From Lepidodermella squamata (taxonomy: Eukaryota; Animalia; Gastrotricha): a stretch of 64,000 nucleotides of DNA. The notes beneath the pieces are model-generated. The model saw only the letters and a program-made list of their open reading frames with translations, did no database searches and had not been told where the DNA came from. Made by a program: the position numbers and the translations under genes. The first letter of the stretch is position 1. Every line of letters begins with the position of its first letter. The stretch is from positions 4,898,001 through 4,962,000 of the forward strand of contig JBLDXI010000024.1 in assembly GCA_047495785.1 (NCBI GenBank), read 5' to 3'. Below are positions 10,635-64,000 of this stretch, piece by piece.

Positions 10635-10721
10635 TCTCGAACGCTGCTTTTGGAAAGGAAAGCTTTCATCTCGTCACTAGCAATGCGTTTGCTGCTCTCA
10701 AACGTGTGAGCTAAAAACGTG

Positions 10722-10793
10722 TGCGTCAGCCGGGAGTCGAACCCGGATCGGCTGCTTGGAAGGCAACCATGCTGACCGTTACACCACTGACGC
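10722..10793 (-). tRNA. tRNA-Gly(TCC)
   Basis: gcgtcagtggtgtaacgg, anticodon TCC. Confidence 0.92.
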
Positions 10794-10867
10794 CTGATGA
10801 ATGCGGGGACTGTATTATGGAGACTAATTGCAGAACTGACTTTCAGTCGTTATATTGCAAAAACTGT

Positions 10868-10949
10868 CGTCGCCAGTAGGATTTGAACCTACGCGCGGAG
10901 ACCGCATCTGATTTCTAGTCAGACCCCTTAACCACTCGGGCATAGCGAC
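10868..10949 (-). tRNA. tRNA-Ser(AGA)
   Basis: tctga-CT AGA AA-tcaga, long variable arm, 82 nt. Confidence 0.92.
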
Positions 10950-11876
10950 TTGAGTGCTCATTCAGCAGTTTCAATAACGATACACCCTGATCGACGTTAC
11001 TGGCTAGTTTTATATTGTGGCAATAGGTCATAAACAAGCCTCAGGTTCCGATAAACAGCAATTGGACTATCAGTTTTAAGACAAACCATTACGAGCTTCA
11101 TCAGCACAATTATCTCAATCGGCAATTATCTCTCGTTATGTCTACGTTATGTCTGCATTCCACTGCATGCTGCACCGCGTCGAAAAAGCTGTCAAGCGGT
11201 GCGAAGGCATGACCGTCTCGGCTAATGATATACCGCGCCACACTGTCATGATACACGTTTCACTGACGTTATCGCTGTCAAGAAGATGGTTGGTGGCGTG
11301 TTAAAAAATGTTGACTTTTGATGCTGCATTCTTTGCTTGGCTTTTTCGTTTTCTTTCAACGGATTAATTTGATTTTCCTTTCGATTGTCTATTAGATTTG
11401 CCTCGAATCACTCCTTGGTACGCCTGCTCGGCTGTTTTCAGGTCGGTCGAGTGGGAAGTTAGGCGCCGCGCATGATCAAAATTTGACAGAGGGATTTGCT
11501 ACAACAGACTCGAAATTGAACTTATTTCAGTTATTAAGTTGTATGAGAATTGCTGGCGCTTTTATCTATGGCTTTCGACTGGTGAATGCGGGGACTGTTC
11601 CGGAGGCTGTCTGCAGAATATTAGAATTTCAAATTAAATTCAGGATATCAAATTGCTGACACTCATTATGAACTTTGACATGCTATAATAGCGTTATTGT
11701 AGCAGGTTTCTCTCTCCTAAGTTTTATTCGAACTAAACCTGCATTGTGTACCGACCGGAGTTCAGTAAATCCGAATGATAAAAAATGTTAGGAGGAAGCA
11801 TTGGTCGAAATTACAGTTATTTAATACGCAAAGTCTGTCGTCATCTTTCCTGTCAATATGTCCAACGTTCTCCCGT

Positions 11877-18786: not shown

Positions 18787-19405
18787 TCTGGCGGGCTTGA
18801 AAGTTCAACGTTGAAATTTCTTCGGGAAAAATGCTTGTGAAATGAACACCCCCCAGCGTCCATGAGCATTTAAATAGGCTCATTTATTGCCCTGGGCTGT
18901 TTACCACACCTGAAATACTTCGAGCAGCGGGTGGCCGCCCGTTCACAAAGATGAAAAAGTTTGGCGTACCTCTATCAGCGGAGGCGCATATGATATGCTA
19001 GGCCAGCTGGCTGAGTGGTGTTGGTAGCCGGTCGAGTTAATTGACTCGCCACGGTAATGTTATATGGCGGATAGCTGAGCACTATCATGCCCGTCCCGCG
19101 CTACAACTTCATGATGTGTGAGCTATCAGATCTGCCGGTCGTAAAAGTCACATGAGCCACGAATGCTCGGTTCGCGTCGCCAACTGCTCACGTTGTCGAG
19201 CATGCCGACCATCGATGGCGAGTAAAGTATTTTGCACCAGCGAGAGTTTCTTTAACAATATTGCTGGACTCTATAGTTAAATCATGAAAGAAGGACCGAT
19301 TTTCTACAACAGAAACAAATTCTAACAGTTAAGTAACCCCAGTTGGTAACCCCAAGTGCCATTACGAACGCTTAGGTAGAGCCTTCCTAGCGGCAGCGTA
19401 GCACC

Positions 19406-19477
19406 GGCCCGTTGGTCTAGGGGTATGATTCTCGCTTCGGGTGCGAGAGGTCTCGGGTTCAATTCCCGAACGGGCCC
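19406..19477 (+). tRNA. tRNA-Pro(CGG)
   Basis: ggcccgttggtctagggg, ctcgc-TT CGG GT-gcgag. Confidence 0.92.
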
Positions 19478-19551
19478 GCCGCATTTTTACCTTTGACAAC
19501 CTGCAAAAAGCGCTGAATGACAGATGAACACAACGTCCAGTTGTCATCATC

Positions 19552-19623
19552 TCCCTGATGGTCTAGTGGTTAGGATTCCGCGCTTTCACCGCGGCGGCCC
19601 GGGTTCGATTCCCGGTCAGGGAA
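19552..19623 (+). tRNA. tRNA-Glu(TTC)
   Basis: tccctgatggtctagtgg, ccgcg-CT TTC AC-cgcgg. Confidence 0.92.
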
Positions 19624-19707
19624 CATTTTTATCATTTCTACGCATGCAACATAAAAATTGACTGGCAAAGTTGTGTGGCTTTATTTTCAAAAAATTCACC
19701 CAATACC

Positions 19708-19779
19708 AGGCTCAGGGGGGGATCGAACCCTCGATCTTCTGCTTACTAGGCAGACGCTCTACCACTAAGCTACTGAGCC
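19708..19779 (-). tRNA. tRNA-Thr(AGT)
   Basis: tctgc-CT AGT AA-gcaga; one A-C mismatch in the T-stem. Confidence 0.87.
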
Positions 19780-19854
19780 GAAGGTGACAGCTAGAATTTC
19801 AGGGACGACGTCTCATTTCGGCGAACAAACCGTTTCTACAGGCAGAAAAAATTC

Positions 19855-19927
19855 TGGAGGATACGGGCGTCGATCCCGTTACCTCTCGCATGCTAAGCGA
19901 GCGCTCTACCATTTGAGCTAATCCCCC
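19855..19927 (-). tRNA. tRNA-Ala(AGC)
   Basis: gggggattagctcaaatgg, anticodon AGC, G3:U70. Confidence 0.92.
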
Positions 19928-19999
19928 TTCGTAGTCAAGTGGTTCGACAAAGCGGTGAAATCAGCCGAATGCAGCTAAACTGAGCAAGGAAAAAGCTTG

Positions 20000-20072
20000 C
20001 GCCCTCCGGGGGACTCGAACCCCCGACCCTGTGATTAAAAGTCACATGCTCTACCGACTGAGCTAGGAAGGC
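20000..20072 (-). tRNA. tRNA-Lys(TTT)
   Basis: tgtga-CT TTT AA-tcaca. Confidence 0.92.
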
Positions 20073-20861
20073 CCTTGAAACGCATGGCCTCTGGCAAAAT
20101 TGATTGATTCAACAGTGGGGCCTGCATCGTCTCGAAGGAGATCTCGGTATTTTGCGCCACTTTAGGTAAACTCGCCCGCAACTTTTTAGGTTAAACTCGA
20201 CTAGCAGGCAGCGTAACTTACACAGTAAAAAAAACTCGGTTTTCACCCAGTTGGAAAAACGGAATTTACCGTGCAGCGTTTACGGAACCCGGTAAATACC
20301 AGATGACAACCGAGTTTTTGCTACTTTTCGCAGTAACCGACCTAGTGCAACCCAGTAAGAACCATGCATCTACGAAATATCGGTTATGAACCTGGTTTGT
20401 ACCGACTTTGTACCGACTTTGCCGCATTTTTACAGAAAATATTTCTAAGTCCCTATTCCTATTGGATCGCATGATGAATTGCACTACCCCTCGAAAATTA
20501 GGCAGGGTACCTATGCAGTGGGCAACTTCATACAGCTGGCATACAGTTGGCATACGAAAGTCGATCATCGAAACCAACCGATTTCTGCCTTTGTAACATC
20601 AACTCGATAATTTATGCAAAAATGTGAATTAATCTCTGATTCAGGCCGCATATAACTCAGGCCTGGTAGCTCTGACCGATCAACAATCAATAATGATTAA
20701 TCTAGCCCTTTCTGGAAAATTTCAACTAAAATGCAGGTTTTATTAACAGTGGAAAATGCTGAAAAGTTAGGAAATCTAATTGCATACATTGCATGTTAAT
20801 AACAATTGCATCACATTCAGTGGTCGGAAATATTAGATATTGCAGCTTTTTAACTGCATAT

Positions 20862-33561: not shown

Positions 33562-33790
33562 TTCGAGTAGAACTTCTCTGGCAGAAGGTCGATGGCTCCC
33601 TGGTGAAATGTTGTTCTTTATGTCTGAAAGAAACTTTGTTCCATCGACATAGTTCTCGCTAGTTATTTTGACGCCTTTAATACTATCGTTCCTTATTCTA
33701 GGTATGCTTGAAAAAGACAGAGACATTGGTTAACGTATTTTCTTTTATTCTACCTAATATATATAATAAATTGTTTGAAAAAACTGATCA

Positions 33791-33862
33791 AGGTCCCATC
33801 GAGAATCGAACTCGAGTCGCTGGATTCAGAGTTCAGAGTGCTAACCGCTACACCATGGGACC
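33791..33862 (-). tRNA. tRNA-Gln(CTG) variant with an anticodon-stem mismatch
   Basis: ctgaa/tccag versus ctgga/tccag in the array. Confidence 0.75.
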
Positions 33863-33941
33863 TCTCGAACGCTGGTTTTGGGAAGGACAGCTTTAATCTC
33901 GTCACTAGCAATTGCTTTCAAACGTGTGAGCCAAAAACGTG

Positions 33942-34013
33942 TGCGTCAGCCGGGAGTCGAACCCGGATCGGCTGCTTGGAAGGCAACCATGCTGACCGTT
34001 ACACCACTGACGC
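33942..34013 (-). tRNA. tRNA-Gly(TCC)
   Basis: Matches the array copy. Confidence 0.9.
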
Positions 34014-34120
34014 CTGATGAAAGCGAGGACTGTTCTGGAGGCTATATCTGCAGAATTGAGCTTCAGTCGTTATAATGCAAAAACTGTCGTCGCCAGTAGG
34101 ATTTGCGAAATGCGGGATAT

Positions 34121-34308
34121 CGTTAGCGGCGTTGAATAACTCGGATTTAGGCTTGTTTACATATGTTTCAAGGTCACGGGTGACAAGTGAAAAGCGGCAT
34201 TTTTCAAAGTAAATGAAGATGAAAAAACATAATGCTTTTTACTTGTCACCTATCACTTTGAAATAGATGTAAACAAGCCTAAAGCCGAGTTATTCAACGT
34301 CGCTAACG
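34121..34308. mobile_element. Foldback MITE inserted in a tRNA-unit spacer; ATAT (or TA) TSD
   Basis: ~75-bp imperfect TIRs; the empty site gATATc is visible in every array unit (e.g. ~51403-51408). Confidence 0.85.
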
Positions 34309-34331
34309 ATATCAATCTATACCGCCATCCC

Positions 34332-34415
34332 GTCAGGATGGCCGAGCGGTCCAAGGCGCGGCGTTCAGGTCGCAGTCAGTTTCTACTGGCGTGGGTTCGA
34401 ATCCCACTTCTGACA
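34332..34415 (+). tRNA. tRNA-Leu(CAG) variant with an anticodon-stem mismatch
   Basis: cggcg/cgcag versus ctgcg/cgcag in the array. Confidence 0.75.
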
Positions 34416-35165
34416 TACATTTTATGCTTTTTCCCATGCTGCGACGCAGTATACGTATCATCAACGATTCGATGTGGGTTCGAACGTGTTGATAGCACGT
34501 GCGCCATGTGCACGCTGACTTGAGTCCAGAGATGGAACAGAGTTCAAATGTACATAGTGGAAACCTATTCTTTCAATTAATTAATAAAAAATTCCAGAAA
34601 ATCAGAAAAATGAGTCCAAGGTCGCTCCAAGCATCGAAATTACCTCGAAGAAGCTTCATCAGAATTACCTGGTCCATTAAAAATACGCTTCAAGTTCACT
34701 GCCATATTGGCAGTGGTCATGTTTGTTATTAATTGATCAATTTCTTTTTATGCGATTTTCCCTATTTCAAGAATTTCAGAAAAATAATCAATGTGTTCGT
34801 CGTTTCAAGAGCTATCTCGATCCTCGAACCGCCGGAAATGATCGATTGTGATTAATCGTTCAAGAATAATGAGCGATCGAAAAATCACCTGATTTGTTTG
34901 CTTTTCCAACCACTCGATGCTGATTCATCGCAACATCTGGCGCCCATGGCATTTACAGGCGTAGTCATGAGTAGGACCTCTATCTTAAAACTAGCTCTAC
35001 GAAAAAGACTCACAGATCACTCCGTTCTATATGAATACTCATCATTTGCCGTTGAATTCGAATTTTTATTCAAACAATTGTCAGTTTAGGTAACAAAATG
35101 TAATGTTTTCAGGATAAAATGTGTTTTGGAAATGTGAGTATAAAAACGCGAGTATCGTCAGTTTT

Positions 35166-47670: not shown

Positions 47671-48231
47671 ATGCTTTCAAGAAAATAAAAAAGCTGAAAT
47701 TAAGGCAGATATTGTTGTCGAAAAACTTGACAAAATTTGGATTATCATGTATTCTGTTCTTATGTTACGTTATGTTTACCTATCGATTGAATAGAAAATA
47801 GAAAATAGTGCGCGTGCAAAATTCAAACTTCACCTAACAAATTGCGAGAGCGCGCACCGATGGAACGAGCTATTTTCGGTGAATTTGGGGTAATTTCATC
47901 AAAATATAGCTTGAGACTCTAACCATTTGATTATTTTCGCGCTACGTCGAATTGATTGAAAAATGTTTCTTGCCCTGGAAAGTTTGCGCGTTTGAAAAGT
48001 TACCGTTCATTACCGGAGCCGCTTATGTAGAAGTGGATGTAAAAATTTCTTAGAATGATCAAAACTCAAGCGCTTCTAAAAATGTAGAAAAATTGCGATT
48101 TCATAAAAGCGGCATATTATCATGATGAACCCTGGTGGCGCGATTTTGCTTGTAAATATTTTTGAGCGGCCTGTCGATTGTAAGGCATCATTATTTCTCG
48201 CATATCTATTTGCAATTTTTTGATCTATCGA

Positions 48232-48265
48232 TCTCCGCGCGTAGGTTCAAATCCTACTGGCGACG
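48232..48265 (+). pseudogene. 3' fragment of tRNA-Ser(AGA) at the array's left junction
   Basis: tctccgcgcgtaggttcaaatcctactggcgacg only. Confidence 0.85.
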
Positions 48266-48342
48266 ACAGTTATTTTTGCAATATAACGACTGAAAGTCAG
48301 TTCTGCAATTAGTCTCCATAATACAGTCCTCGCATTCATCAG

Positions 48343-48414
48343 GCGTCAGTGGTGTAACGGTCAGCATGGTTGCCTTCCAAGCAGCCGATCCGGGTTCGAC
48401 TCCCGGCTGACGCA
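48343..48414 (+). tRNA. tRNA-Gly(TCC)
   Basis: Cloverleaf and anticodon read by eye. Confidence 0.93.
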
Positions 48415-48501
48415 CACGTTTTTAGCTCACACGTTTGAGAGCAGCAAACGCATTGCTAGTGACGAGATGAAAGCTTTCCTTTCCAAAAGCAGCGTTCGAG
48501 A

Positions 48502-48573
48502 GGTCCCATGGTGTAGCGGTTAGCACTCTGGACTCTGAATCCAGCGACTCGAGTTCGATTCTCGATGGGACCT
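48502..48573 (+). tRNA. tRNA-Gln(CTG)
   Basis: Cloverleaf and anticodon read by eye. Confidence 0.93.
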
Positions 48574-48671
48574 TGATCGGTTTTTTCAAACAAACATAGC
48601 TGGAACTCAACAGCTGGAAACTTGCGATCATAATATTTGTTACCATTCAAACCTTTTCTTTCACTAGCCTA

Positions 48672-48743
48672 GGGGGCATAGCTCAGTGGTAGAGCGTCTC
48701 ATTCGCATTGTGAAGGTCTCGGGTTCAATCCCCGATGCCTCCA
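48672..48743 (+). tRNA. tRNA-Ala(CGC)
   Basis: G3:U70; U-U mismatch in the anticodon stem. Confidence 0.85.
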
Positions 48744-48833
48744 GTTGGCACTTTTTCGCGTAAATGTTGAGAAGTAACAGCCATAATACTGATGATATGA
48801 ATCGGAAATAAGTCTAAGCATGCGAAAAAAGAG

Positions 48834-48917
48834 TGTCAGAAGTGGGGTTCGAACCCACGCCCTCTTTCGAGGACCAGATCTTGAGTCTGGCGCCTTAGAC
48901 CGCTCGGCCATCCTGAC
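48834..48917 (-). tRNA. tRNA-Leu(CAA)
   Basis: Cloverleaf with variable arm. Confidence 0.93.
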
Positions 48918-49019
48918 CGTCTGACTGAATATTCAATTTGATTCAGATGAACCAGCGCGGGTTCAGCTTCGAGCATGCAATAAACCTCAAATCTTGTATA
49001 GGCTATACTTCATGTGACA

Positions 49020-49092
49020 GGCGCTGTGGCGAAATGGCTATCGCGTCGGACTTCGGATCCGAAGATTGTGGGTTCGAGTCCCATCAGCGTCG
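49020..49092 (+). tRNA. tRNA-Arg(TCG)
   Basis: tcgga-CT TCG GA-tccga. Confidence 0.9.
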
Positions 49093-49205
49093 TCCGCTTT
49101 TGTATTTTTGTTAGTTTCAGTAGGCTTCTGAAGCCATTTAAACAAATATTTCGACAACTGCTTGCGTAAATTTAATCTGCCTGCAATCTACCACGCATTT
49201 CAAGG

Positions 49206-49278
49206 GCCTTCCTAGCTCAGTCGGTAGAGCATGTGACTTTTAATCACAGGGTCGGGGGTTCGAGTCCCCCGGAGGGCG
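49206..49278 (+). tRNA. tRNA-Lys(TTT)
   Basis: Cloverleaf and anticodon read by eye. Confidence 0.93.
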
Positions 49279-49365
49279 CAAGCTTTTTCCTCAGTTGCTC
49301 GGTTTAGCTGCATTCGGCTGATTTCACCGCTTCGTCGAATCACTTGCCGTGGCGTTAACTACGAA

Positions 49366-49438
49366 GGGGGATTAGCTCAAATGGTAGAGCGCTCGCTTAG
49401 CATGCGAGAGGTAACGGGATCGACGCCCGTATCCTCCA
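49366..49438 (+). tRNA. tRNA-Ala(AGC)
   Basis: Cloverleaf, G3:U70. Confidence 0.93.
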
Positions 49439-49496
49439 CAATTTTTTCTGCCTGTAGAAATGAGACGTCGTCCCTGAAATTCTAGCTGTCACCTTC

Positions 49497-49568
49497 GGCT
49501 CAGTAGCTTAGTGGTAGAGCGTCTGCCTAGTAAGCAGAAGATCGAGGGTTCGATCCCCCCCTGAGCCT
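49497..49568 (+). tRNA. tRNA-Thr(AGT)
   Basis: Anticodon AGT. Confidence 0.87.
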
Positions 49569-49652
49569 GGTATTGGGTGAATTTTTTTAAAATAAAGCCA
49601 CAAAACTTTGCCAGTCAGTTTTTATGTTGCAGGCGTGGAAATGATAAAAATG

Positions 49653-49724
49653 TTCCCTGACCGGGAATCGAACCCGGGCCGCCGCGGTGAAAGCGCGGAA
49701 TCCTAACCACTAGACCATCAGGGA
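49653..49724 (-). tRNA. tRNA-Glu(TTC)
   Basis: Cloverleaf and anticodon read by eye. Confidence 0.93.
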
Positions 49725-49806
49725 GATGATGACAACGAGACCACTGGACGTGGTGTTCATCTGTCATTCAGCGCTTTTCGCAGGTTGTCAATGGTAAAAA
49801 TGCGGC

Positions 49807-49878
49807 GGGCCCGTTCGGGAATTGAACCCGAGACCTCTCGCACCCGAAGCGAGAATCATACCCCTAGACCAACGGGCC
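49807..49878 (-). tRNA. tRNA-Pro(CGG)
   Basis: Cloverleaf and anticodon read by eye. Confidence 0.93.
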
Positions 49879-49953
49879 GGTGCTACGCTGCCGCTAGGAA
49901 GGCTCTACCTAAGCGTTCGTAATGACACTTGGGGTTACCAAAAACGTGGGGCA

Positions 49954-50026
49954 CGCCGAGACCCGGGATCGAACCAGGGACCTTTAGATCTTCAGTCTAA
50001 CGCTCTCCCAACTGAGCTATCTCGGC
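49954..50026 (-). tRNA. tRNA-Phe(GAA)
   Basis: gccgagatagctcagttgggagagcgttagactGAAgatctaa. Confidence 0.93.
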
Positions 50027-50100
50027 TGTTATGTACAGCAGTGGTAAAGTTGATGCTTCGCTAGCTCATTGCAGGCTGTTATAGTTTGATCTAAAAATTG

Positions 50101-50117
50101 CGCTCCTGGGTGGGCTC

Positions 50118-50157
<40 letters not shown>

Positions 50158-50174
50158 AATTGCGCCACAGAAGC
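50101..50174 (-). tRNA. tRNA-Asn(GTT)
   Basis: ttcgg-CT GTT AA-ccgaa. Confidence 0.93.
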
Positions 50175-50355
50175 TCACGGCAGGCAGAACTAGCAGGAGG
50201 CTAAGGCCTAACAACGATTGGCCAAGGTCTGCGAACTTGGGTCCAGTTCGATGTGCAGTCATTAGAGTAGCGGACGCGATTTTATCCTTTACGGCTTTTG
50301 CAGCCGACAAGCTTTTGTGATACACCAGCTTAACATTACCTCACCCCTCACGCGA

Positions 50356-50441
50356 CCCGCGATAGCTCAGCTGGTAGAGCGGAGGACTGTAGATGCAACG
50401 CAGCTATCCTTAGGTCGGTGGTTCAAGTCCGCCTCGCGGGA
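50356..50441 (+). tRNA. tRNA-Tyr(GTA) with a 13-nt intron (50393-50405)
   Basis: gagga-CT GTA G[atgcaacgcagct]A-tcctt; canonical 37/38 intron position. Confidence 0.93.
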
Positions 50442-50520
50442 TCGATGACTTTTTTACAGCTGATGAGCCCGCAGAATCGGTTATTTTCGAGCCTCGAAGA
50501 AGCTTTGCCATCTTGCATCA

Positions 50521-50592
50521 GGCCCGTTGGTCTAGGGGTATGATTCTCGCTTTGGGTGCGAGAGGTCTCGGGTTCAAATCCCGGACGGGCCC
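50521..50592 (+). tRNA. tRNA-Pro(TGG)
   Basis: Anticodon TGG. Confidence 0.93.
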
Positions 50593-50678
50593 AAGCTTTT
50601 TGATATAATAGCCGAAGCGGCGGCATTACAAAAGGTGCATGCAATAAATAGCCTTCAGCAAGTAATGCTATCATAGCG

Positions 50679-50749
50679 GCATCGGTGGTTCAGTGGTAGA
50701 ATTCTCGCCTGCCACGCGGGAGGCCCGGGTTCGATTCCCGGCCGATGCA
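50679..50749 (+). tRNA. tRNA-Gly(GCC)
   Basis: gcatcggtggttcagtggtagaattctcgcctGCCacg. Confidence 0.94.
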
Positions 50750-50847
50750 AGCGACCCTGTTTTTGCATGAAAGCTTTGAGCAGCACCCGGCGAACAATGA
50801 AGCGCGGAAATTCAAAAGCAATGCCAACAGACTCCATGTCACCAAAA

Positions 50848-50919
50848 TCCTTGGTAGTATAGTGGTTAGTATCCCCGCCTGTCACGCGGGAGACCAGGGT
50901 TCGATTCCCTGCCAAGGAG
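50848..50919 (+). tRNA. tRNA-Asp(GTC)
   Basis: cccgc-CT GTC AC-gcggg. Confidence 0.94.
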
Positions 50920-50992
50920 TCAGCTTTTTACATGCGGATTTGTGGATTTCAAGCAAATTTATTCAGTAATAACGTGCAAAAATGTTGATTGC

Positions 50993-51065
50993 CGCCCGAT
51001 GTGGGGCTCGAACCCACGACCCTGGGATTAAGAGTCCCATGCTCTACCGACTGAGCTAACCGGGC
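50993..51065 (-). tRNA. tRNA-Lys(CTT)
   Basis: tggga-CT CTT AA-tccca. Confidence 0.94.
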
Positions 51066-51155
51066 TTAGCCGACATAGCTGATGACTAGGGCAGGTTCAA
51101 AGACCCAAATCAGGCATGCGACACGAGTCAGAGACAGAGAGTGTGTAAAAACATT

Positions 51156-51228
51156 CGAGGCTGCCAGGAGTCGAACCTGGAATCTTCTGATCCGTAGTCA
51201 GACGCGTTGTCCATTGCGCCACAACCCC
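51156..51228 (-). tRNA. tRNA-Arg(ACG)
   Basis: tctga-CT ACG GA-tcaga. Confidence 0.93.
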
Positions 51229-51300
51229 ATCGTGTTGATTTAGCATCATATCGTTGATGATACGTACAGCGTTGTAGCACAGGAAAAAGCATAAAATGTA

Positions 51301-51384
51301 TGTCAGAAGTGGGATTCGAACCCACGCCAGTAGAAACTGACTGCGACCTGAACGCAGCGCCTTGGACCGCTCGGCCATCCTGAC
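51301..51384 (-). tRNA. tRNA-Leu(CAG)
   Basis: ctgcg-TT CAG GT-cgcag. Confidence 0.93.
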
Positions 51385-51549
51385 GGGATGGTGGTATAGA
51401 TTGATATCCCGCAGACGGCATTTCGCAAAGCCAGTAGAGCGTCGCCACAAAGTACTTAGTTTAATTACCTGTTGCCAATATAAAACTTAAACTAGCCAGC
51501 AATGTCGATCAGGGTGTATCGTTGTTGAAACTGCTGAATGAGCACTCAA

Positions 51550-51631
51550 GTCGCTATGCCCGAGTGGTTAAGGGGTCTGACTAGAAATCAGATGCGGTCT
51601 CCGCGCGTAGGTTCAAATCCTACTGGCGACG
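51550..51631 (+). tRNA. tRNA-Ser(AGA), first gene of unit 2
   Basis: Complete 82-nt copy. Confidence 0.93.
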
Positions 51632-53483
51632 ACAGTTATTTTTGCAATATAACGACTGAAAGTCAGTTCTGCAATTAGTCTCCATAATACAGTCCTCGCA
51701 TTCATCAGGCGTCAGTGGTGTAACGGTCAGCATGGTTGCCTTCCAAGCAGCCGATCCGGGTTCGACTCCCGGCTGACGCACACGTTTTTAGCTCACACGT
51801 TTGAGAGCAGCAAACGCATTGCTAGTGACGAGATGAAAGCTTTCCTTTCCAAAAGCAGCGTTCGAGAGGTCCCATGGTGTAGCGGTTAGCACTCTGGACT
51901 CTGAATCCAGCGACTCGAGTTCGATTCTCGATGGGACCTTGATCGGTTTTTTCAAACAAACATAGCTGGAACTCAACAGCTGGAAACTTGCGATCATAAT
52001 ATTTGTTACCATTCAAACCTTTTCTTTCACTAGCCTAGGGGGCATAGCTCAGTGGTAGAGCGTCTCATTCGCATTGTGAAGGTCTCGGGTTCAATCCCCG
52101 ATGCCTCCAGTTGGCACTTTTTCGCGTAAATGTTGAGAAGTAACAGCCATAATACTGATGATATGAATCGGAAATAAGTCTAAGCATGCGAAAAAAGAGT
52201 GTCAGAAGTGGGGTTCGAACCCATGCCCTCTTTCGAGGACCAGATCTTGAGTCTGGCGCCTTAGACCGCTCGGCCATCCTGACCGTCTGACTGAATATTC
52301 AATTTGATTCAGATGAACCAGCGCGGGTTCAGCTTCGAGCATGCAATAAACCTCAAATCTTGTATAGGCTATACTTCATGTGACAGGCGCTGTGGCGAAA
52401 TGGCTATCGCGTCGGACTTCGGATCCGAAGATTGTGGGTTCGAGTCCCATCAGCGTCGTCCGCTTTTGTATTTTTGTTAGTTTCAGTAGGCTTCTGAAGC
52501 CATTTAAACAAATATTTCGACAACTGCTTGCGTAAATTTAATCTGCCTGCAATCTACCACGCATTTCAAGGGCCTTCCTAGCTCAGTCGGTAGAGCATGT
52601 GACTTTTAATCACAGGGTCGGGGGCTCGAGTCCCCCGGAGGGCGCAAGCTTTTTCCTCAGTTGCTCGGTTTAGCTGCATTCGGCTGATTTCACCGCTTCG
52701 TCGAATCACTTGCCGTGGCGTTAACTACGAAGGGGGATTAGCTCAAATGGTAGAGCGCTCGCTTAGCATGCGAGAGGTAACGGGATCGACGCCCGTATCC
52801 TCCACAATTTTTTCTGCCTGTAGAAATGAGACGTCGTCCCTGAAATTCTAGCTGTCACCTTCGGCTCAGTAGCTTAGTGGTAGAGCGTCTGCCTAGTAAG
52901 CAGAAGATCGAGGGTTCGATCCCCCCCTGAGCCTGGTATTGGGTGAATTTTTTGAAAATAAAGCCACAAAACTTTGCCAGTCAGTTTTTATGTTGCAGGC
53001 GTGGAAATGATAAAAATGTTCCATGACCGGGAATCGAACCCGGGCCGCCGCGGTGAAAGCGCGGAATCCTAACCACTAGACCATCAGGGAGATGATGACA
53101 ACGAGACCACTGGACGTGGTGTTCATCTGTCATTCAGCACTTTTCGCAGGTTGTCAAAGGTAAAAATGCGGCGGGCCCGTTCGGGAATTGAACCCGAGAC
53201 CTCTCGCACCCGAAGCGAGAATCATACCCCTAGACCAACGGGCCGGTGCTACGCCGCCGCTAGGAAGGCTCTACCTAAGCGTTCGTAATGACACTTGGGG
53301 TTACCAAAAACGTGGGGCACGCCGAGACCCGGGATCGAACCAGGGACCTTTAGATCTTCAGTCTAACGCTCTCCCAACTGAGCTATCTCGGCTGTTATGT
53401 ACAGCAGTGGTAAAGTTGATGCTTCGCTAGCTCATTGCAGGCTGTTATAGTTTGATCTAAAAATTGCGCTCCTGGGTGGGCTC

Positions 53484-53523
<40 letters not shown>

Positions 53524-54906
53524 AATTGCGCCACAGAAGCTCACGGCAGGCAGAACTAGCAGGAGGCTAAGGCCTAACAACGATTGGCCAAGGTCTGCGA
53601 ACTTGGGTCCAGTTCGATGTGCAGTCATTAGAGTAGCGGACGCGATTTTATCCTTTACGGCTTTTGCAGCCGACAAGCTTTTGTGATACACCAGCTTAAC
53701 ATTACCTCACCCCTCACGCGACCCGCGATAGCTCAGCTGGTAGAGCGGAGGACTGTAGATGCAACGCAGCTATCCTTAGGTCGGTGGTTCAAGTCCGCCT
53801 CGCGGGATCGATGACTTTTTTACAGCTGATGAGCCCGCAGAATCGGTTATTTTCGAGCCTCGAAGAAGCTTTGCCATCTTGCATCAGGCCCGTTGGTCTA
53901 GGGGTATGATTCTCGCTTTGGGTGCGAGAGGTCTCGGGTTCAAATCCCGGACGGGCCCAAGCTTTTTGATATAATAGCCGAAGCGGCGGCATTACAAAAG
54001 GTGCATGCAATAAATAGCCTTCAGCAAGTAATGCTATCATAGCGGCATCGGTGGTTCAGTGGTAGAATTCTCGCCTGCCACGCGGGAGGCCCGGGTTCGA
54101 TTCCCGGCCGATGCAAGCGACCCTGTTTTTGCATGAAAGCTTTGAGCAGCACCCGGCGAACAATGAAGCGCGGAAATTCAAAAGCAATGCCAACAGACTC
54201 CATGTCACCAAAATCCTTGGTAGTATAGTGGTTAGTATCCCCGCCTGTCACGCGGGAGACCAGGGTTCGATTCCCTGCCAAGGAGTCAGCTTTTTACATG
54301 CGGATTTGTGGATTTCAAGCAAATTTATTCAGTAATAACGTGCAAAAATGTTGATTGCCGCCCGATGTGGGGCTCGAACCCACGACCCTGGGATTAAGAG
54401 TCCCATGCTCTACCGACTGAGCTAACCGGGCTTAGCCGACATAGCTGATGACTAGGGCAGGTTCAAAGACCCAAATCAGGCATGCGACACGAGTCAGAGA
54501 CAGAGAGTGTGTAAAAACATTCGAGGCTGCCAGGAGTCGAACCTGGAATCTTCTGATCCGTAGTCAGACGCGTTGTCCATTGCGCCACAACCCCATCGTG
54601 TTGATTTAGCATCATGATACGTACAGCGTTGTAGCACAGGAAAAAGCATAAAATGTATGTCAGAAGTGGGATTCGAACCCACGCCAGTAGAAACTGACTG
54701 CGACCTGAACGCAGCGCCTTGGACCGCTCGGCCATCCTGACGGGATGGTGGTATAGATTGATATCCCGCAGACGGCATTTCGCAAAGCCAGTAGAGCGTC
54801 GCCACAAAGTACTTAGTTTAATTACCTGTTGCCAATATAAAACTTAAACTAGCCAGCAATGTCGATCAGGGTGTATCGTTGTTGAAACTGCTGAATGAGC
54901 ACTCAA
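51550..54906. tRNA. Array unit 2: 20 tRNA genes in the same order (Ser, Gly, Gln, Ala, Leu, Arg, Lys, Ala, Thr, Glu, Pro, Phe, Asn, Tyr, Pro, Gly, Asp, Lys, Arg, Leu); offset about +3366 from unit 1
   Basis: Near-identical repeat; point variants in Leu-CAA, Lys-TTT and Glu-TTC. Confidence 0.95.
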
Positions 54907-56858
54907 GTCGCTATGCCCGAGTGGTTAAGGGGTCTGACTAGAAATCAGATGCGGTCTCCGCGCGTAGGTTCAAATCCTACTGGCGACGACAGTTATTTTT
55001 GCAATATAACGACTGAAAGTCAGTTCTGCAATTAGTCTCCATAATACAGTCCTCGCATTCATCAGGCGTCAGTGGTGTAACGGTCAGCATGGTTGCCTTC
55101 CAAGCAGCCGATCCGGGTTCGACTCCCGGCTGACGCACACGTTTTTAGCTCACACGTTTGAGAGCAGCAAACGCATTGCTAGTGACGAGATGAAAGCTTT
55201 CCTTTCCAAAAGCAGCGTTCGAGAGGTCCCATGGTGTAGCGGTTAGCACTCTGGACTCTGAATCCAGCGACTCGAGTTCGATTCTCGATGGGACCTTGAT
55301 CGGTTTTTTCAAACAAACATAGCTGGAACTCAACAGCTGGAAACTTGCGATCATAATATTTGTTACCATTCAAACCTTTTCTTTCACTAGCCTAGGGGGC
55401 ATAGCTCAGTGGTAGAGCGTCTCATTCGCATTGTGAAGGTCTCGGGTTCAATCCCCGATGCCTCCAGTTGGCACTTTTTTCGCGTAAATGTTGAGAAGTA
55501 ACAGCCATAATACTGATGATATGAATCGGAAATAAGTCTAAGCATGCGAAAAAAGAGTGTCAGAAGTGGGGTTCGAACCCACGCCCTCTTTCGAGGACCA
55601 GATCTTGAGTCTGGCGCCTTAGACCGCTCGGCCATCCTGACCGTCTGACTGAATATTCAATTTGATTCAGATGAACCAGCGCGGGTTCAGCTTCGAGCAT
55701 GCAATAAACCTCAAATCTTGTATAGGCTATACTTCATGTGACAGGCGCTGTGGCGAAATGGCTATCGCGTCGGACTTCGGATCCGAAGATTGTGGGTTCG
55801 AGTCCCATCAGCGTCGTCCGCTTTTGTATTTTTGTTAGTTTCAGTAGGCTTCTGAAGCCATTTAAACAAATATTTCGACAACTGCTTGCGTAAATTTAAT
55901 CTGCCTGCAATCTACCACGCATTTCAAGGGCCTTCCTAGCTCAGTCGGTAGAGCATGTGACTTTTAATCACAGGGTCGGGGGTTCGAGTCCCCCGGAGGG
56001 CGCAAGCTTTTTCCTCAGTTGCTCGGTTTAGCTGCATTCGGCTGATTTCACCGCTTCGTCGAATCACTTGCCGTGGCGTTAACTACGAAGGGGGATTAGC
56101 TCAAATGGTAGAGCGCTCGCTTAGCATGCGAGAGGTAACGGGATCGACGCCCGTATCCTCCACAATTTTTTCTGCCTGTAGAAACGGTTTGTTCGCCGAA
56201 ATGAGACGTCGTCCCTGAAATTCTAGCTGTCACCTTCGGCTCAGTAGCTTAGTGGTAGAGCGTCTGCCTAGTAAGCAGAAGATCGAGGGTTCGATCCCCC
56301 CCTGAGCCTGGTATTGGGTGAATTTTTTGAAAATAAAGCCACAAAACTTTGCCAGTCAGTTTTTATGTTGCAGGCGTGGAAATGATAAAAATGTTCCCTG
56401 ACCGGGAATCGAACCCGGGCCGCCGCGGTGAAAGCGCGGAATCCTAACCACTAGACCATCAGGGAGATGATGACAACGAGACCACTGGACGTGGTGTTCA
56501 TCTGTCATTCAGCGCTTTTCGCAGGTTGTCAAAGGTAAAAATGCGGCGGGCCCGTTCGGGAATTGAACCCGAGACCTCTCGCACCCGAAGCGAGAATCAT
56601 ACCCCTAGACCAACGGGCCGGTGCTACGCCGCCGCTAGGAAGGCTCTACCTAAGCGTTCGTAATGACACTTGGGGTTACCAAAAACGTGGGGCACGCCGA
56701 GACCCGGGATCGAACCAGGGACCTTTAGATCTTCAGTCTAACGCTCTCCCAACTGAGCTATCTCGGCTGTTATGTACAGCAGTGGTAAAGTTGATGCTTC
56801 GCTAGCTCATTGCAGGCTGTTATAGTTTGATCTAAAAATTGCGCTCCTGGGTGGGCTC

Positions 56859-56898
<40 letters not shown>

Positions 56899-58281
56899 AA
56901 TTGCGCCACAGAAGCTCACGGCAGGCAGAACTAGCAGGAGGCTAAGGCCTAACAACGATTGGCCAAGGTCTGCGAACTTGGGTCCAGTTCGATGTGCAGT
57001 CATTAGAGTAGCGGACGCGATTTTATCCTTTACGGCTTTTGCAGCCGACAAGCTTTTGTGATACACCAGCTTAACATTACCTCACCCCTCACGCGACCCG
57101 CGATAGCTCAGCTGGTAGAGCGGAGGACTGTAGATGCAACGCAGCTATCCTTAGGTCGGTGGTTCAAGTCCGCCTCGCGGGATCGATGACTTTTTTACAG
57201 CTGATGAGCCCGCAGAATCGGTTATTTTCGAGCCTCGAAGAAGCTTTGCCATCTTGCATCAGGCCCGTTGGTCTAGGGGTATGATTCTCGCTTTGGGTGC
57301 GAGAGGTCTCGGGTTCAAATCCCGGACGGGCCCAAGCTTTTTGATATAATAGCCGAAGCGGCGGCATTACAAAAGGTGCATGCAATAAATAGCCTTCAGC
57401 AAGTAATGCTATCATAGCGGCATCGGTGGTTCAGTGGTAGAATTCTCGCCTGCCACGCGGGAGGCCCGGGTTCGATTCCCGGCCGATGCAAGCGACCCTG
57501 TTTTTGCATGAAAGCTTTGAGCAGCACCCGGCGAACAATGAAGCGCGGAAATTCAAAAGCAATGCCAACAGACTCCATGTCACCAAAATCCTTGGTAGTA
57601 TAGTGGTTAGTATCCCCGCCTGTCACGCGGGAGACCAGGGTTCGATTCCCTGCCAAGGAGTCAGCTTTTTACATGCGGATTTGTGGATTTCAAGCAAATT
57701 TATTCAGTAATAACGTGCAAAAATGTTGATTGCCGCCCGATGTGGGGCTCGAACCCACGACCCTGGGATTAAGAGTCCCATGCTCTACCGACTGAGCTAA
57801 CCGGGCTTAGCCGACATAGCTGATGACTAGGGCAGGTTCAAAGACCCAAATCAGGCATGCGACACGAGTCAGAGACAGAGAGTGTGTAAAAACATTCGAG
57901 GCTGCCAGGAGTCGAACCTGGAATCTTCTGATCCGTAGTCAGACGCGTTGTCCATTGCGCCACAACCCCATCGTGTTGATTTAGCATCATGATACGTACA
58001 GCGTTGTAGCACAGGAAAAAGCATAAAATGTATGTCAGAAGTGGGATTCGAACCCACGCCAGTAGAAACTGACTGCGACCTGAACGCAGCGCCTTGGACC
58101 GCTCGGCCATCCTGACGGGATGGTGGTATAGATTGATATCCCGCAGACGGCATTTCGCAAAGCCAGTAGAGCGTCGCCACAAAGTACTTAGTTTAATTAC
58201 CTGTTGCCAATATAAAACTTAAACTAGCCAGCAATGTCGATCAGGGTGTATCGTTGTTGAAACTGCTGAATGAGCACTCAA
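54907..58281. tRNA. Array unit 3: 20 tRNA genes
   Basis: Near-identical repeat; carries the 17-bp spacer segment. Confidence 0.95.
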
Positions 58282-60218
58282 GTCGCTATGCCCGAGTGGT
58301 TAAGGGGTCTGACTAGAAATCAGATGCGGTCTCCGCGCGTAGGTTCAAATCCTACTGGCGACGACAGTTATTTTTGCAATATAACGACTGAAAGTCAGTT
58401 CTGCAATTAGTCTCCATAATATACAGTCCTCGCATTCATCAGGCGTCAGTGGTGTAACGGTCAGCATGGTTGCCTTCCAAGCAGCCGATCCGGGTTCGAC
58501 TCCCGGCTGACGCACACGTTTTTAGCTCACACGTTTGAGAGCAGCAAACGCATTGCTAGTGACGAGATGAAAGCTTTCCTTTCCAAAAGCAGCGTTCGAG
58601 AGGTCCCATGGTGTAGCGGTTAGCACTCTGGACTCTGAATCCAGCGACTCGAGTTCGATTCTCGATGGGACCTTGATCAGTTTTTTCAAACAAACATAGC
58701 TGGAACTCAACAGCTGGAAACTTGCGATCATAATATTTGTTACCATTCAAACCTTTTCTTTCACTAGCCTAGGGGGCATAGCTCAGTGGTAGAGCGTCTC
58801 ATTCGCATTGTGAAGGTCTCGGGTTCAATCCCCGATGCCTCCAGTTGGCACTTTTTTCGCGTAAATGTTGAGAAGTAACAGCCATAATACTGATGATATG
58901 AATCGGAAATAAGTCTAAGCATGCGAAAAAAGAGTGTCAGAAGTGGGGTTCGAACCCACGCCCTCTTTCGAGGACCAGATCTTGAGTCTGGCGCCTTAGA
59001 CCGCTCGGCCATCCTGACCGTCTGACTGAATATTCAATTTGATTCAGATGAACCAGCGCGGGTTCAGCTTCGAGCATGCAATAAACCTCAAATCTTGTAT
59101 AGGCTATACTTCATGTGACAGGCGCTGTGGCGAAATGGCTATCGCGTCGGACTTCGGATCCGAAGATTGTGGGTTCGAGTCCCATCAGCGTCGTCCGCTT
59201 TTGTATTTTTGTTAGTTTCAGTAGGCTTCTGAAGCCATTTAAACAAATGTTTCGACAACTGCTTGCGTAAATTTAATCTGCCTGCAATCTACCACGCATT
59301 TCAAGGGCCTTCCTAGCTCAGTCGGTAGAGCATGTGACTTTTAATCACAGGGTCGGGGGTTCGAGTCCCCCGGAGGGCGCAAGCTTTTTCCTCAGTTGCT
59401 CGGTTTAGCTGCATTCGGCTGATTTCACCGCTTCGTCGAATCACTTGCTTTGGCGTTAACTACGAAGGGGGATTAGCTCAAATGGTAGAGCGCTCGCTTA
59501 GCATGCGAGAGGTAACGGGATCGACGCCCGTATCCTCCACAATTTTTTCTGCCTGTAGAAATGAGACGTCGTCCCTGAAATTCTAGCTGTCACCTTCGGC
59601 TCAGTAGCTTAGTGGTAGAGCGTCTGCCTAGTAAGCAGAAGATCGAGGGTTCGATCCCCCCCTGAGCCTGGTATTGGGTGAATTTTTTGAAAATAAAGCC
59701 ACAAAACTTTGCCAGTCAGTTTTTATGTTGCAGGCGTGGAAATGATAAAAATGTTCCCTGACCGGGAATCGAACCCGGGCCGCCGCGGTGAAAGCGCGGA
59801 ATCCTAACCACTAGACCATCAGGGAGATGATGACAACGAGACCACTGGACGTGGTGTTCATCTGTCATTCAGCGCTTTTCGCAGGTTGTCAAAGGTAAAA
59901 ATGCGGCGGGCCCGTTCGGGAATTGAACCCGAGACCTCTCGCACCCGAAGCGAGAATCATACCCCTAGACCAACGGGCCGGTGCTACGCTGCCGCTAGGA
60001 AGGCTCTACCTAAGCGTTCGTAATGACACTTGGGGTTACCAAAAACGTGGGGCACGCCGAGACCCGGGATCGAACCAGGGACCTTTAGATCTTCAGTCTA
60101 ACGCTCTCCCAAATGAGCTATCTCGGCTGTTATGTACAGCAGTGGTAAAGTTGATGCTTCGCTAGCTCATTGCAGGCTGTTATAGTTTGATCTAAAAATT
60201 GCGCTCCTGGGTGGGCTC

Positions 60219-60258
<40 letters not shown>

Positions 60259-61650
60259 AATTGCGCCACAGAAGCTCACGGCAGGCAGAACTAGCAGGAG
60301 GCTAAGGCCTAACAACGATTGGCCAAGGTCTGCGAACTTGGGTCCAGTTCGATGTGCAGTCATTAGAGTAGCGGACGCGATTTTATCCTTTACGGCTTTT
60401 GCAGCCGACAAGCTTTTGTGATACACCAGCTTAACATTACCTCACCCCTCACGCGACCCGCGATAGCTCAGCTGGTAGAGCGGAGGACTGTAGATGCAAC
60501 GCAGCTATCCTTAGGTCGGTGGTTCAAGTCCGCCTCGCGGGATCGATGACTTTTTTACAGCTGATGAGCCCGCAGAATCGGTTATTTTCGAGCCTCGAAG
60601 AAGCTTTGCCATCTTGCATCAGGCCCGTTGGTCTAGGGGTATGATTCTCGCTTTGGGTGCGAGAGGTCTCGGGTTCAAATCCCGGACGGGCCCAAGCTTT
60701 TTGATATAATAGCCGAAGCGGCGGCATTACAAAAGGTGCATGCAATAAATAGCCTTCAGCAAGTAATGCTATCATAGCGGCATCGGTGGTTCAGTGGTAG
60801 AATTCTCGCCTGCCACGCGGGAGGCCCGGGTTCGATTCCCGGCCGATGCAAGCGACCCTGTTTTTGCATGAAAGCTTTGAGCAGCACCCGGCGAACAATG
60901 AAGCGCGGAAATTCAAAAGCAATGCCAACAGACTCCATGTCACCAAAATCCTTGGTAGTATAGTGGTTAGTATCCCCGCCTGTCACGCGGGAGACCAGGG
61001 TTCGATTCCCTGCCAAGGAGTCAGCTTTTTACATGCGGATTTGTGGATTTCAAGCAAATTTATTCAGTAATAACGTGCAAAAATGTTGATTGCCGCCCGA
61101 TGTGGGGCTCGAACCCACGACCCTGGGATTAAGAGTCCCATGCTCTACCGACTGAGCTAACCGGGCTTAGCCGACATAGCTGATGACTAGGGCAGGTTCA
61201 AAGACCCAAATCAGGCATGCGACACGAGTCAGAGACAGAGAGTGTGTAAAAACATTCGAGGCTGCCAGGAGTCGAACCTGGAATCTTCTGATCCGTAGTC
61301 AGACGCGTTGTCCATTGCGCCACAACCCCATCGTGTTGAGTTAGCATCATATCGTTGATGATACGTACAGCGTTGTAGCACAGGAAAAAGCATAAAATGT
61401 ATGTCAGAAGTGGGATTCGAACCCACGCCAGTAGAAACTGACTGCGACCTGAACGCAGCGCCTTGGACCGCTCGGCCATCCTGACGGGATGGTGGTATAG
61501 ATTGATATCCCGCAGACGGCATTTCGCAAAGCCAGTAGAGCGTCGCCACAAAGTACTTAGTTTAATTACCTGTTGCCAATATAAAACTTAAACTAGCCAG
61601 CAATGTCGATCAGGGTGTATCGTTGTTGAAACTGCTGAATGAGCACTCAA
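58282..61650. tRNA. Array unit 4: 20 tRNA genes
   Basis: Near-identical repeat; D-loop variant in Phe. Confidence 0.95.
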
Positions 61651-63602
61651 GTCGCTATGCCCGAGTGGTTAAGGGGTCTGACTAGAAATCAGATGCGGTC
61701 TCCGCGCGTAGGTTCAAATCCTACTGGCGACGACAGTTATTTTTGCAATATAACGACTGAAAGTCAGTTCTGCAATTAGTCTCCATAATACAGTCCTCGC
61801 ATTCATCAGGCGTCAGTGGTGTAACGGTCAGCATGGTTGCCTTCCAAGCAGCCGATCCGGGTTCGACTCCCGGCTGACGCAAACGTTTTTAGCTCACACG
61901 TTTGAGAGCAGCAAACGCATTGCTAGTGACGAGATGAAAGCTTTCCTTTCCAAAAGCAGCGTTCGAGAGGTCCCATGGTGTAGCGGTTAGCACTCTGGAC
62001 TCTGAATCCAGCGACTCGAGTTCGATTCTCGATGGGACCTTGATCGGTTTTTTCAAACAAACATAGCTGGAACTCAACCGCTGGAAACTTGCGATCATAA
62101 TATTTGTTACCATTCAAACCTTTTCTTTCACTAGCCTAGGGGGCATAGCTCAGTGGTAGAGCGTCTCATTCGCATTGTGAAGGTCTCGGGTTCAATCCCC
62201 GATGCCTCCAGTTGGCACTTTTTTCGCGTAAATGTTGAGAAGTAACAGCCATAATACTGATGATATGAATCGGAAATAAGTCTAAGCATGCGAAAAAAGA
62301 GTGTCAGAAGTGGGGTTCGAACCCACGCCCTCTTTCGAGGACCAGATCTTGAGTCTGGCGCCTTAGACCGCTCGGCCATCCTGACCGTCTGACTGAATAT
62401 TCAATTTGATTCAGATGAACCAGCGCGGGTTCAGCTTCGAGCATGCAATAAACCTCAAATCTTGTATAGGCTATACTTCATGTGACAGGCGCTGTGGCGA
62501 AATGGCTATCGCGTCGGACTTCGGATCCGAAGATTGTGGGTTCGAGTCCCATCAGCGTCGTCCGCTTTTGTATTTTTGTTAGTTTCAGTAGGCTTCTGAA
62601 GCCATTTAAACAAATATTTCGACAACTGCTTGCGTAAATTTAATCTGCCTGCAATCTACCACGCATTTCAAGGGCCTTCCTAGCTCAGTCGGTAGAGCAT
62701 GTGACTTTTAATCACAGGGTCGGGGGTTCGAGTCCCCCGGAGGGCGCAAGCTTTTTCCTCAGTTGCTCGGTTTAGCTGCATTCGGCTGATTTCACCGCTT
62801 CGTCGAATCACTTGCCGTGGCGTTAACTACGAAGGGGGATTAGCTCAAATGGTAGAGCGCTCGCTTAGCATGCGAGAGGTAACGGGATCGACGCCCGTAT
62901 CCTCCACAATTTTTTCTGCCTGTAGAAACGGTTTGTTCGCCGAAATGAGACGTCGTCCCTGAAATTCTAGCTGTCACCTTCGGCTCAGTAGCTTAGTGGT
63001 AGAGCGTCTGCCTAGTAAGCAGAAGATCGAGGGTTCGATCCCCCCCTGAGCCTGGTATTGGGTGAATTTTTTGAAAATAAAGCCACAAAACTTTGCCAGT
63101 CAGTTTTTATGTTGCAGGCGTGGAAATGATAAAAATGTTCCCTGACCGGGAATCGAACCCGGGCCGCCGCGGTGAAAGCGCGGAATCCTAACCACTAGAC
63201 CATCAGGGAGATGATGACAACGAGACCACTGGACGTGGTGTTCATCTGTCATTCAGCGCTTTTCGCAGGTTGTCAAAGGTAAAAATGCGGCGGGCCCGTT
63301 CGGGAATTGAACCCGAGACCTCTCGCACCCGAAGCGAGAATCATACCCCTAGACCAACGGGCCGGTGCTACGCTGCCGCTAGGAAGGCTCTACCTAAGCG
63401 TTCGTAATGACACTTGGGGTTACCAAAAACGTGGGGCACGCCGAGACCCGGGATCGAACCAGGGACCTTTAGATCTTCAGTCTAACGCTCTCCCAACTGA
63501 GCTATCTCGGCTGTTATGTACAGCAGTGGTAAAGTTGATGCTTCGCTAGCTCATTGCAGGCTGTTATAGTTTGATCTAAAAATTGCGCTCCTGGGTGGGC
63601 TC

Positions 63603-63642
<40 letters not shown>

Positions 63643-64000
63643 AATTGCGCCACAGAAGCTCACGGCAGGCAGAACTAGCAGGAGGCTAAGGCCTAACAAC
63701 GATTGGCCAAGGTCTGCGAACTTGGGTCCAGTTCGATGTGCAGTCATTAGAGTAGCGGACGCGATTTTATCCTTTACGGCTTTTGCAGCCGACAAGCTTT
63801 TGTGATACACCAGCTTAACATTACCTCACCCCTCACGCGACCCGCGATAGCTCAGCTGGTAGAGCGGAGGACTGTAGATGCAACGCAGCTATCCTTAGGT
63901 CGGTGGTTCAAGTCCGCCTCGCGGGATCGATGACTTTTTTACAGCTGATGAGCCCGCAGAATCGGTTATTTTCGAGCCTCGAAGAAGCTTTGCCATCTTG
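61651..64000. tRNA. Array unit 5 (cut by the window end): 14 tRNA genes, Ser through Tyr (Tyr 63841-63926)
   Basis: Near-identical repeat. Confidence 0.95.

Follow-up and report, generated by a model that had tools for sequence, protein, structure and literature searches.

Anatomy of the tandem tRNA gene array

We analyzed a 64-kb window of the gastrotrich Lepidodermella squamata genome (NCBI GenBank assembly GCA_047495785.1, contig JBLDXI010000024.1, positions 4,898,001 to 4,962,000 of the forward strand) that contains a tandem array of transfer RNA (tRNA) genes. All coordinates are given relative to the first nucleotide of this window. Self-comparison with blastn revealed that from position 48229 to the window end at 64000 a unit of 3357-3375 bp is repeated head-to-tail, with five copies in register and the periodicity expected of tandem tRNA gene arrays. 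A first-pass annotation, made from the sequence alone, had placed the array at 48232-64000 with a 3.37-kb unit and about 170 bp per gene. The tandem array and its unit are borne out by our measurements (about one gene per 168 bp), and its start is moved to 48229, inside a tRNA-Ser gene.

The array is truncated on the left and is cut off by the window end on the right, leaving about 4.7 units in view, four of them seen from their start. All units are in the forward orientation. Unit 1 (48229..51549, 3321 bp) retains 19 complete tRNA genes and aligns by blastn at 99.5% over unit positions 46-3357. Its left end, which is also the left boundary of the array, is a severed tRNA-Ser(AGA) of which only the 3' 37 nt remain (48229..48265, forward strand), homology to the other units starting at unit position 46. 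Units 2 (51550..54906, 3357 bp), 3 (54907..58281, 3375 bp) and 4 (58282..61650, 3369 bp) carry 20 tRNA genes each, and unit 5 (61651..64000) ends with the window after 14 complete genes, from Ser to Tyr. This brings the number of complete genes in the array to 93 (19 + 20 + 20 + 20 + 14), in agreement with the approximately 93 counted in the first-pass annotation.

Each unit encodes 20 tRNAs with 20 distinct anticodons for 14 amino acids, 12 of them on the forward and 8 on the reverse strand. Gene number, amino acids and strand split are the same as those initially proposed, and all of the anticodons listed at that stage are correct according to ARAGORN and Rfam. The genes form six blocks of alternating strand (+4, -1, +4, -4, +4, -3), which we describe for unit 3, our reference unit for positions and comparisons. 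The first forward block consists of tRNA-Ser(AGA) (54907..54988, 82 nt), Gly(TCC) (55066..55137), Gln(CTG) (55225..55296) and Ala(CGC) (55395..55466). It is followed on the reverse strand by Leu(CAA) (55558..55641, 84 nt and without intron), and then by a second forward block of Arg(TCG) (55744..55816), Lys(TTT) (55930..56002), Ala(AGC) (56090..56162) and Thr(AGT) (56238..56309). Four reverse-strand genes come next, namely Glu(TTC) (56394..56465), Pro(CGG) (56548..56619), Phe(GAA) (56695..56767) and Asn(GTT) (56842..56915). The unit continues on the forward strand with Tyr(GTA) (57097..57182, 86 nt), Pro(TGG) (57262..57333), Gly(GCC) (57420..57490) and Asp(GTC) (57589..57660), and closes on the reverse strand with Lys(CTT) (57734..57806), Arg(ACG) (57897..57969) and Leu(CAG) (58033..58116, 84 nt). 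The order Arg-Lys...Pro is mirrored by Pro...Lys-Arg within the unit; an ancient inverted duplication would produce such symmetry, but no spacer similarity backs it and we regard the idea as speculation.

Transfer RNA sequence makes up 45% of the unit. Gaps between genes in the same direction or tail-to-tail measure 63-113 bp, and the three head-to-head gaps (102, 165 and 181 bp) are among the longest of the unit, as would be needed to make room for two adjoining upstream regions. The spacers are unique-sequence and an Rfam scan found no 5S RNA in the unit. Genes for Val, Ile, Met, Cys, His and Trp tRNAs, which the first-pass annotation had reported missing, are absent from the entire window.

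Both the integrity of these genes and their organization can be assessed from their sequences. Across the window, the Rfam family RF00005 identifies 107 tRNA genes and ARAGORN 102. The difference of five is due to the Tyr genes, which contain an intron: ARAGORN finds 19 tRNA genes per unit, each of them also found by Rfam, and the twentieth, Tyr(GTA), is added by RF00005 alone (57.5 bits in unit 3). Its 13-nt intron lies at the canonical site, 3' of the anticodon. The scores of all 107 genes (46-70.5 bits; 50-70 bits for those in the array) are above the RF00005 gathering threshold of 29 bits, and all 20 genes of the unit fold into a canonical cloverleaf. Each of the 20 is followed by an oligo-T terminator, a run of T4-T6 beginning 3-14 nt past the 3' end. 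In a simple pattern check, 19 of 20 genes fit the B-box pattern GG[AT]TC[AG]ANNC at the T arm, Gln carrying the near variant AGTTCGATTC, and the A-box pattern, sought at positions 8-19, was matched by all but Ser (19 of 20). Within 60 nt upstream of the 20 genes, we found neither a shared motif nor a clear AT-rich peak. The 20 kinds of tRNA are canonical and full-length and have no body in common, unlike what is expected of a tRNA-derived short interspersed element or of transposon-borne copies.

With genes on both strands and a terminator for each, the unit does not have the layout of a single transcription unit. Judged by these signals, it is predicted to be a set of 20 separate RNA polymerase III (Pol III) genes and not an operon or one precursor of the ribosomal DNA (rDNA) type. 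The first-pass annotation had viewed the unit as an rDNA-like cassette delivering its tRNAs at a fixed 1:1 stoichiometry. The likeness to rDNA holds for tandem repetition and homogenization and fails for the single transcript. Similarly, 1:1 gene dosage is given by construction, but nothing forces a 1:1 RNA output because the 20 genes, on one strand or the other, are each equipped with a separate internal promoter and oligo-T terminator.

Homogenization of the units and divergence of outlying copies

The units are 99.67-99.88% identical at aligned bases (98.9-99.5% with insertions and deletions (indels) counted), any two of them differing by 3-11 substitutions and 0-3 indels. The variants found in the array comprise indels of 17 bp (units 3 and 5; lengthening the Ala-AGC/Thr spacer in unit 3), 9 bp (units 1 and 4) and 2 bp, a difference in the length of a T run and about 15 substitutions. 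Indels and single-base variants are spread across the units as a mosaic, arguing for distinct physical copies rather than duplication by the assembler.

The mosaic bears directly on the possibility that mis-assembled repetitive reads turned a single cluster, or very few copies, into an apparent array. An assembler would not invent such unit-specific indels and substitutions from one copy; in addition, the array passes cleanly into unique DNA on its left and the diverged partial copies described below attest to a duplication history of the unit at this locus. Conversely, the window ends inside the array, and support from public sequence runs may not be independent of the assembly. Of the sampled 31-mers, the contigs of one run under the same organism label contain 70% for the unit and 84% for the flank; this run is the only one with most of the sequence and may be the assembly's own source. 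Weighing both sides, we consider an assembly artefact highly improbable. In two further runs, under a different organism label, 24-30% of the unit's words are present; neither run is listed for the flank, where a listing needs at least a twentieth of the words. Many environmental runs contain 13-17% of the unit's words, a share that we take as the tRNA-sized conserved parts. Spacer-only scans of metagenome contigs returned 0 matches for a 24-mer of the Asn/Tyr spacer and 0 matches for a two-part spacer pattern that is conserved in the outlying copies.

These outlying copies are three inverted partial units on the reverse strand upstream of the array, adding 14 tRNA genes that the first-pass annotation does not mention. 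Copy A (9869..11034) is a mosaic with six genes (Ser, Gly-TCC, Gln, Ala-CGC, Leu-CAA and Arg-TCG). Copy B (19343..20087) has five genes (Lys-TTT, Ala-AGC, Thr, Glu and Pro-CGG) and is identical to the array at 364/365 positions in its tRNA parts and at 367/403 in its spacers. Copy C (33771..34461) has three, Leu-CAG followed by a palindrome of about 200 nt and then by Gly-TCC and Gln.

Comparison of the three copies with the array separates the genes from their surroundings. The tRNA parts are identical at 1079 of 1082 positions and the spacers at 1209 of 1337 (Fisher p = 3e-30), so that the tRNAs of the array and of the outlying clusters are essentially identical in sequence. The tRNA sequence at this locus is constrained. 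Such a contrast would fit either purifying selection on the tRNAs or homogenization limited to them, and the retention of the tRNA parts while the spacers drifted by about 10% argues for selection on the tRNAs. The 40 nt upstream of the genes do not share this constraint, as their conservation between array and outlying copies is not significantly above that of other spacer sequence (11.4% versus 12.3% of positions changed, p = 0.70).

The same comparison reveals concerted evolution of the array, whose units are 99.7-99.9% alike against a spacer identity of about 90% to the outlying copies. Unequal crossing-over together with gene conversion would hold the copies at about 99.8% identity. Conversion may also have reached beyond the array. 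In the Ala-CGC/Leu-CAA/Arg-TCG half of copy A (9869-10428), the spacers are 97.6% identical to the array (323/331), whereas those of the Ser/Gly/Gln half (10468-11034) are 86.6% identical (303/350), a significant difference (p = 6e-8). The pattern points to recent gene conversion, in which the array, 38 kb from this inverted copy, would have overwritten a tract of it.

Copies A and B end at adjacent positions of the unit, 996 for the left end of A and 1009 for the right end of B. These ends, now 10 kb apart and in swapped order, were thus once contiguous and indicate that an older cluster was rearranged. A 1.08-kb direct repeat with 76% identity (11804-12874 and 18196-19237) lies between the two copies. 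In copy C, the palindrome (34116-34313, arms 80.6% complementary) stands in place of the 5' 64 nt of tRNA-Ser together with the spacer between Leu-CAG and Ser, and looks like a putative foldback insertion, or one resembling a miniature inverted-repeat transposable element, that severed tRNA-Ser. A second palindrome, at 15799-16063 (83%), is unrelated to it.

The left edge of the array is equally abrupt. There, a clean junction at position 46 of tRNA-Ser joins the interrupted gene to AT-rich DNA of unrelated sequence. An edge inside a gene and scattered partial copies would be explained if a multimer of the unit, arising from a circular intermediate or carried by a transposon, had been inserted as mobile or extrachromosomal cargo. 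The second severing of tRNA-Ser, beside the 200-nt palindrome of copy C, points in the same direction, as does an open reading frame (ORF) for a PIF/Harbinger-type DDE transposase in the window (28150-29355). However, neither a terminal repeat nor a transposase adjoins the left edge: the flank at 44000-48228 contains short ORFs only and yields no Rfam family in a low-threshold scan. The right edge lies beyond the window, and unequal crossing-over with later deletion accounts equally well for the truncated left edge. We therefore give an origin as inserted cargo very little credence.

The remainder of the window carries animal-type genes according to Pfam, including ALDH7A1, a class C G-protein-coupled receptor, a Cys-loop channel, a calponin-repeat protein and the Harbinger-type transposase. 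ALDH7A1 (alpha-aminoadipic semialdehyde dehydrogenase; 21676-25053, reverse strand) lies between copies B and C and has two long exons about 1.7 kb apart. Its protein is 60-72% identical to matches from molluscs, an annelid, arthropods and fish, and the best match (75%) is to a Logan contig of run ERR1712137. The transposase ORF, on the reverse strand, encodes an intact-looking protein of 401 aa with DDE_Tnp_4 and HTH_Tnp_4 domains, and its nearest relatives, at 50-56% identity, are found in metagenome assemblies. Nearer to the array, a GC-rich stretch (47060-47494) remains without an Rfam match at a cutoff as lenient as E = 1; an 85-aa ORF with an ATG start begins at 47060.

Decoding content and activity of the array

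We then considered what such an array could supply. The 14 amino acids that it serves account for approximately 78% of the codons in five ORFs of the window, a small sample of 1229 codons restricted to the Pfam-matched parts for three of the ORFs. The array is a partial tRNA kit, and other loci must encode the tRNA species that it lacks. In the five ORFs, TCG, ACG and CCG each rank first in their codon family, and GCG ties with GCC. The ratio of observed to expected CpG is 1.29 in the flank (window positions 1-48000) and 1.03 in the array. The flank value and the preference of the ORFs for NCG codons point to what is probably a genome without CpG depletion.

Taken together, the evidence leads us to favor the view that this locus is probably a genuine, recently homogenized array of 20 independent Pol III genes, with selection on the tRNAs, serving as a high-dosage tRNA source. 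Selection would act on the tRNA sequences, and the role of the array would be to supply 20 tRNA species for 14 amino acids at high dosage. Under this interpretation, the array is expected to be transcribed, to be present in a large number of copies and to contribute to the tRNA pool.

Several observations weigh against a functional role. In the comparison with codon usage that the first-pass annotation had put forward, the anticodons do not simply track the commonest codons. The commonest Ser and Thr codons are TCG and ACG, and for both amino acids the array holds only A34 isoacceptors, whose anticodons should not read TCG or ACG. Among the units of the array, the tRNA parts show no deficit of substitutions, with 5 in 1505 nt of tRNA and 10 in 1852 nt of spacer (p = 0.44), a test that is underpowered at only 15 substitutions. 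Moreover, four private changes fall inside genes, all at critical positions and each lowering the Rfam score. Unit 2 harbors three of them, at T54 in the B box of Lys-TTT, in a T-stem pair of Leu-CAA and in the acceptor pair 4-69 of Glu-TTC, and unit 4 the last, a G15-to-T change in Phe-GAA. Single copies are therefore not visibly under selection, as would also be seen in a silent array.

Indeed, the array could be real but largely silent, a heterochromatic satellite of tRNA genes amplified selfishly or neutrally, with the outlying clusters and dispersed genes supplying the pool. The lack of substitution depletion in its tRNA parts and the damaging-looking private changes in 4 of 93 gene copies, three of them in one unit, would be expected of such a satellite. 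There is also a precedent in the Arabidopsis Ser/Tyr (SYY) cluster, which is silenced in most tissues (PMC12308677). On the other hand, the other 89 of the 93 copies match the consensus exactly and all 20 species retain canonical structure and terminators. A divergence of about 0.2% offers too few changes to detect selection either way. Finally, the CpG ratios of flank and array given above carry no CpG-decay signature of long-term methylation. We accordingly judge a silent satellite to be unlikely, although less so than either an assembly artefact or inserted cargo.

If the array is instead a functional tRNA source, as we favor, redundancy would buffer its single copies and damaging changes would be tolerated. 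Unit 2, in which three of four private substitutions lie inside tRNA genes, all three at critical positions, may be a decaying copy within the array. In this respect, the array illustrates that damaging mutations can survive where copies are redundant.

Little is known of what determines the supply of individual tRNAs in animals. With 20 tRNA species locked at equal dosage and amplified together, the array constitutes a natural experiment on whether output is set by copy number or gene by gene. The difference of about 10% between spacers of the array and of the outlying copies means that the leaders and trailers of precursor tRNAs can separate array transcripts from non-array transcripts. The array also speaks to the limit of Pol III gene packing, since at about one gene per 168 bp the spacing is close to the upstream room expected, by estimate, for the transcription factors of a Pol III gene. 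More tentatively, one can envisage that most tRNA genes of this animal reside in a few complementary multi-species arrays, in the style of Entamoeba but with 20-gene units, whose copy number and perhaps stage-specific activation, for example in oogenesis, would set the tRNA pool, each unit acting as a nucleosome-free Pol III 'factory' domain. We hold this broader scenario to be possible but speculative.

Comparison with known tandem tRNA systems

Tandem repeats of tRNA genes have been described in several eukaryotes, and the initial claim that known units carry far fewer tRNA species agrees with the 3-8 genes per unit of Xenopus, Entamoeba, human and Arabidopsis. The Xenopus laevis repeat reportedly holds 8 tRNA genes per 3.18 kb unit and is said to be present in about 150 copies. 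Oocyte and somatic regulation of the Xenopus Tyr genes is documented. Like the gastrotrich array, this repeat belongs to an animal nuclear genome, has a unit of nearly equal length arranged head-to-tail and contains several tRNA species, Tyr included, as independent Pol III genes. With 8 genes per unit compared with 20, however, its density is 2.5 times lower. The work on the 3.18-kb tandem repeat, by Muller, Clarkson and Galas (1987), is cited in PMC1635290.

The arrays of Entamoeba likewise consist of short tandem units dense in tRNA genes. The arrays comprise 25 types of unit, none with more than 5 tRNA genes and some also with 5S RNA; they occupy over 10% of the genome and have microsatellite-like repeats between the tRNA genes (PMC2652664). 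Almost all tRNA genes of Entamoeba are distributed over complementary arrays (PMC2652664), the arrangement that the first-pass annotation had predicted, as an alternative to dispersed genes, for the amino acids missing here. Entamoeba is a protist, and its units of up to 5 tRNA genes differ from the gastrotrich unit, in which 20 genes are separated by unique-sequence spacers and 5S RNA is absent.

In human, a variable number tandem repeat of tRNA genes at 1q23.3 has a 7.3 kb unit with 5 tRNA genes and 9-43 copies per allele (PMC4041453). The unit is GC-rich, bound by CTCF and flanked by long terminal repeats, and the units are about 98% identical (PMC4041453). Transfer RNA genes cover less than 6% of the human unit (PMC4041453), compared with 45% in the gastrotrich. 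Between human and the mouse counterpart of 1q23.3, the tRNAs alone are conserved and the spacers drift (PMC4041453), which is the same contrast as that between the gastrotrich array and its outlying copies.

Clustered or tandem tRNA genes whose activity is restricted to certain stages or tissues provide models for how the array might be regulated. The Arabidopsis Ser/Tyr array has 3 tRNA genes per unit for 2 amino acids in 27 units (PMC2886086), and its silencing in most tissues is accompanied by reactivation in root tips (PMC12308677). Zebrafish chromosome 4 carries large tRNA clusters, mostly of maternal type (bioRxiv 10.1101/869651). These are described per anticodon, in contrast to the defined unit of 20 species found here. 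A 2010 survey also recorded heterogeneous tRNA clusters in Nematostella, frog and zebrafish (PMC2888827).

Our literature search found no published tandem unit in which tRNA species are comparably numerous (about 20). Long-read assemblies may commonly contain arrays of this kind that have gone unreported. While tandem tRNA arrays as such are already known, the 20-gene unit of L. squamata is the richest that we could find described, unusual in both its complexity and its density.

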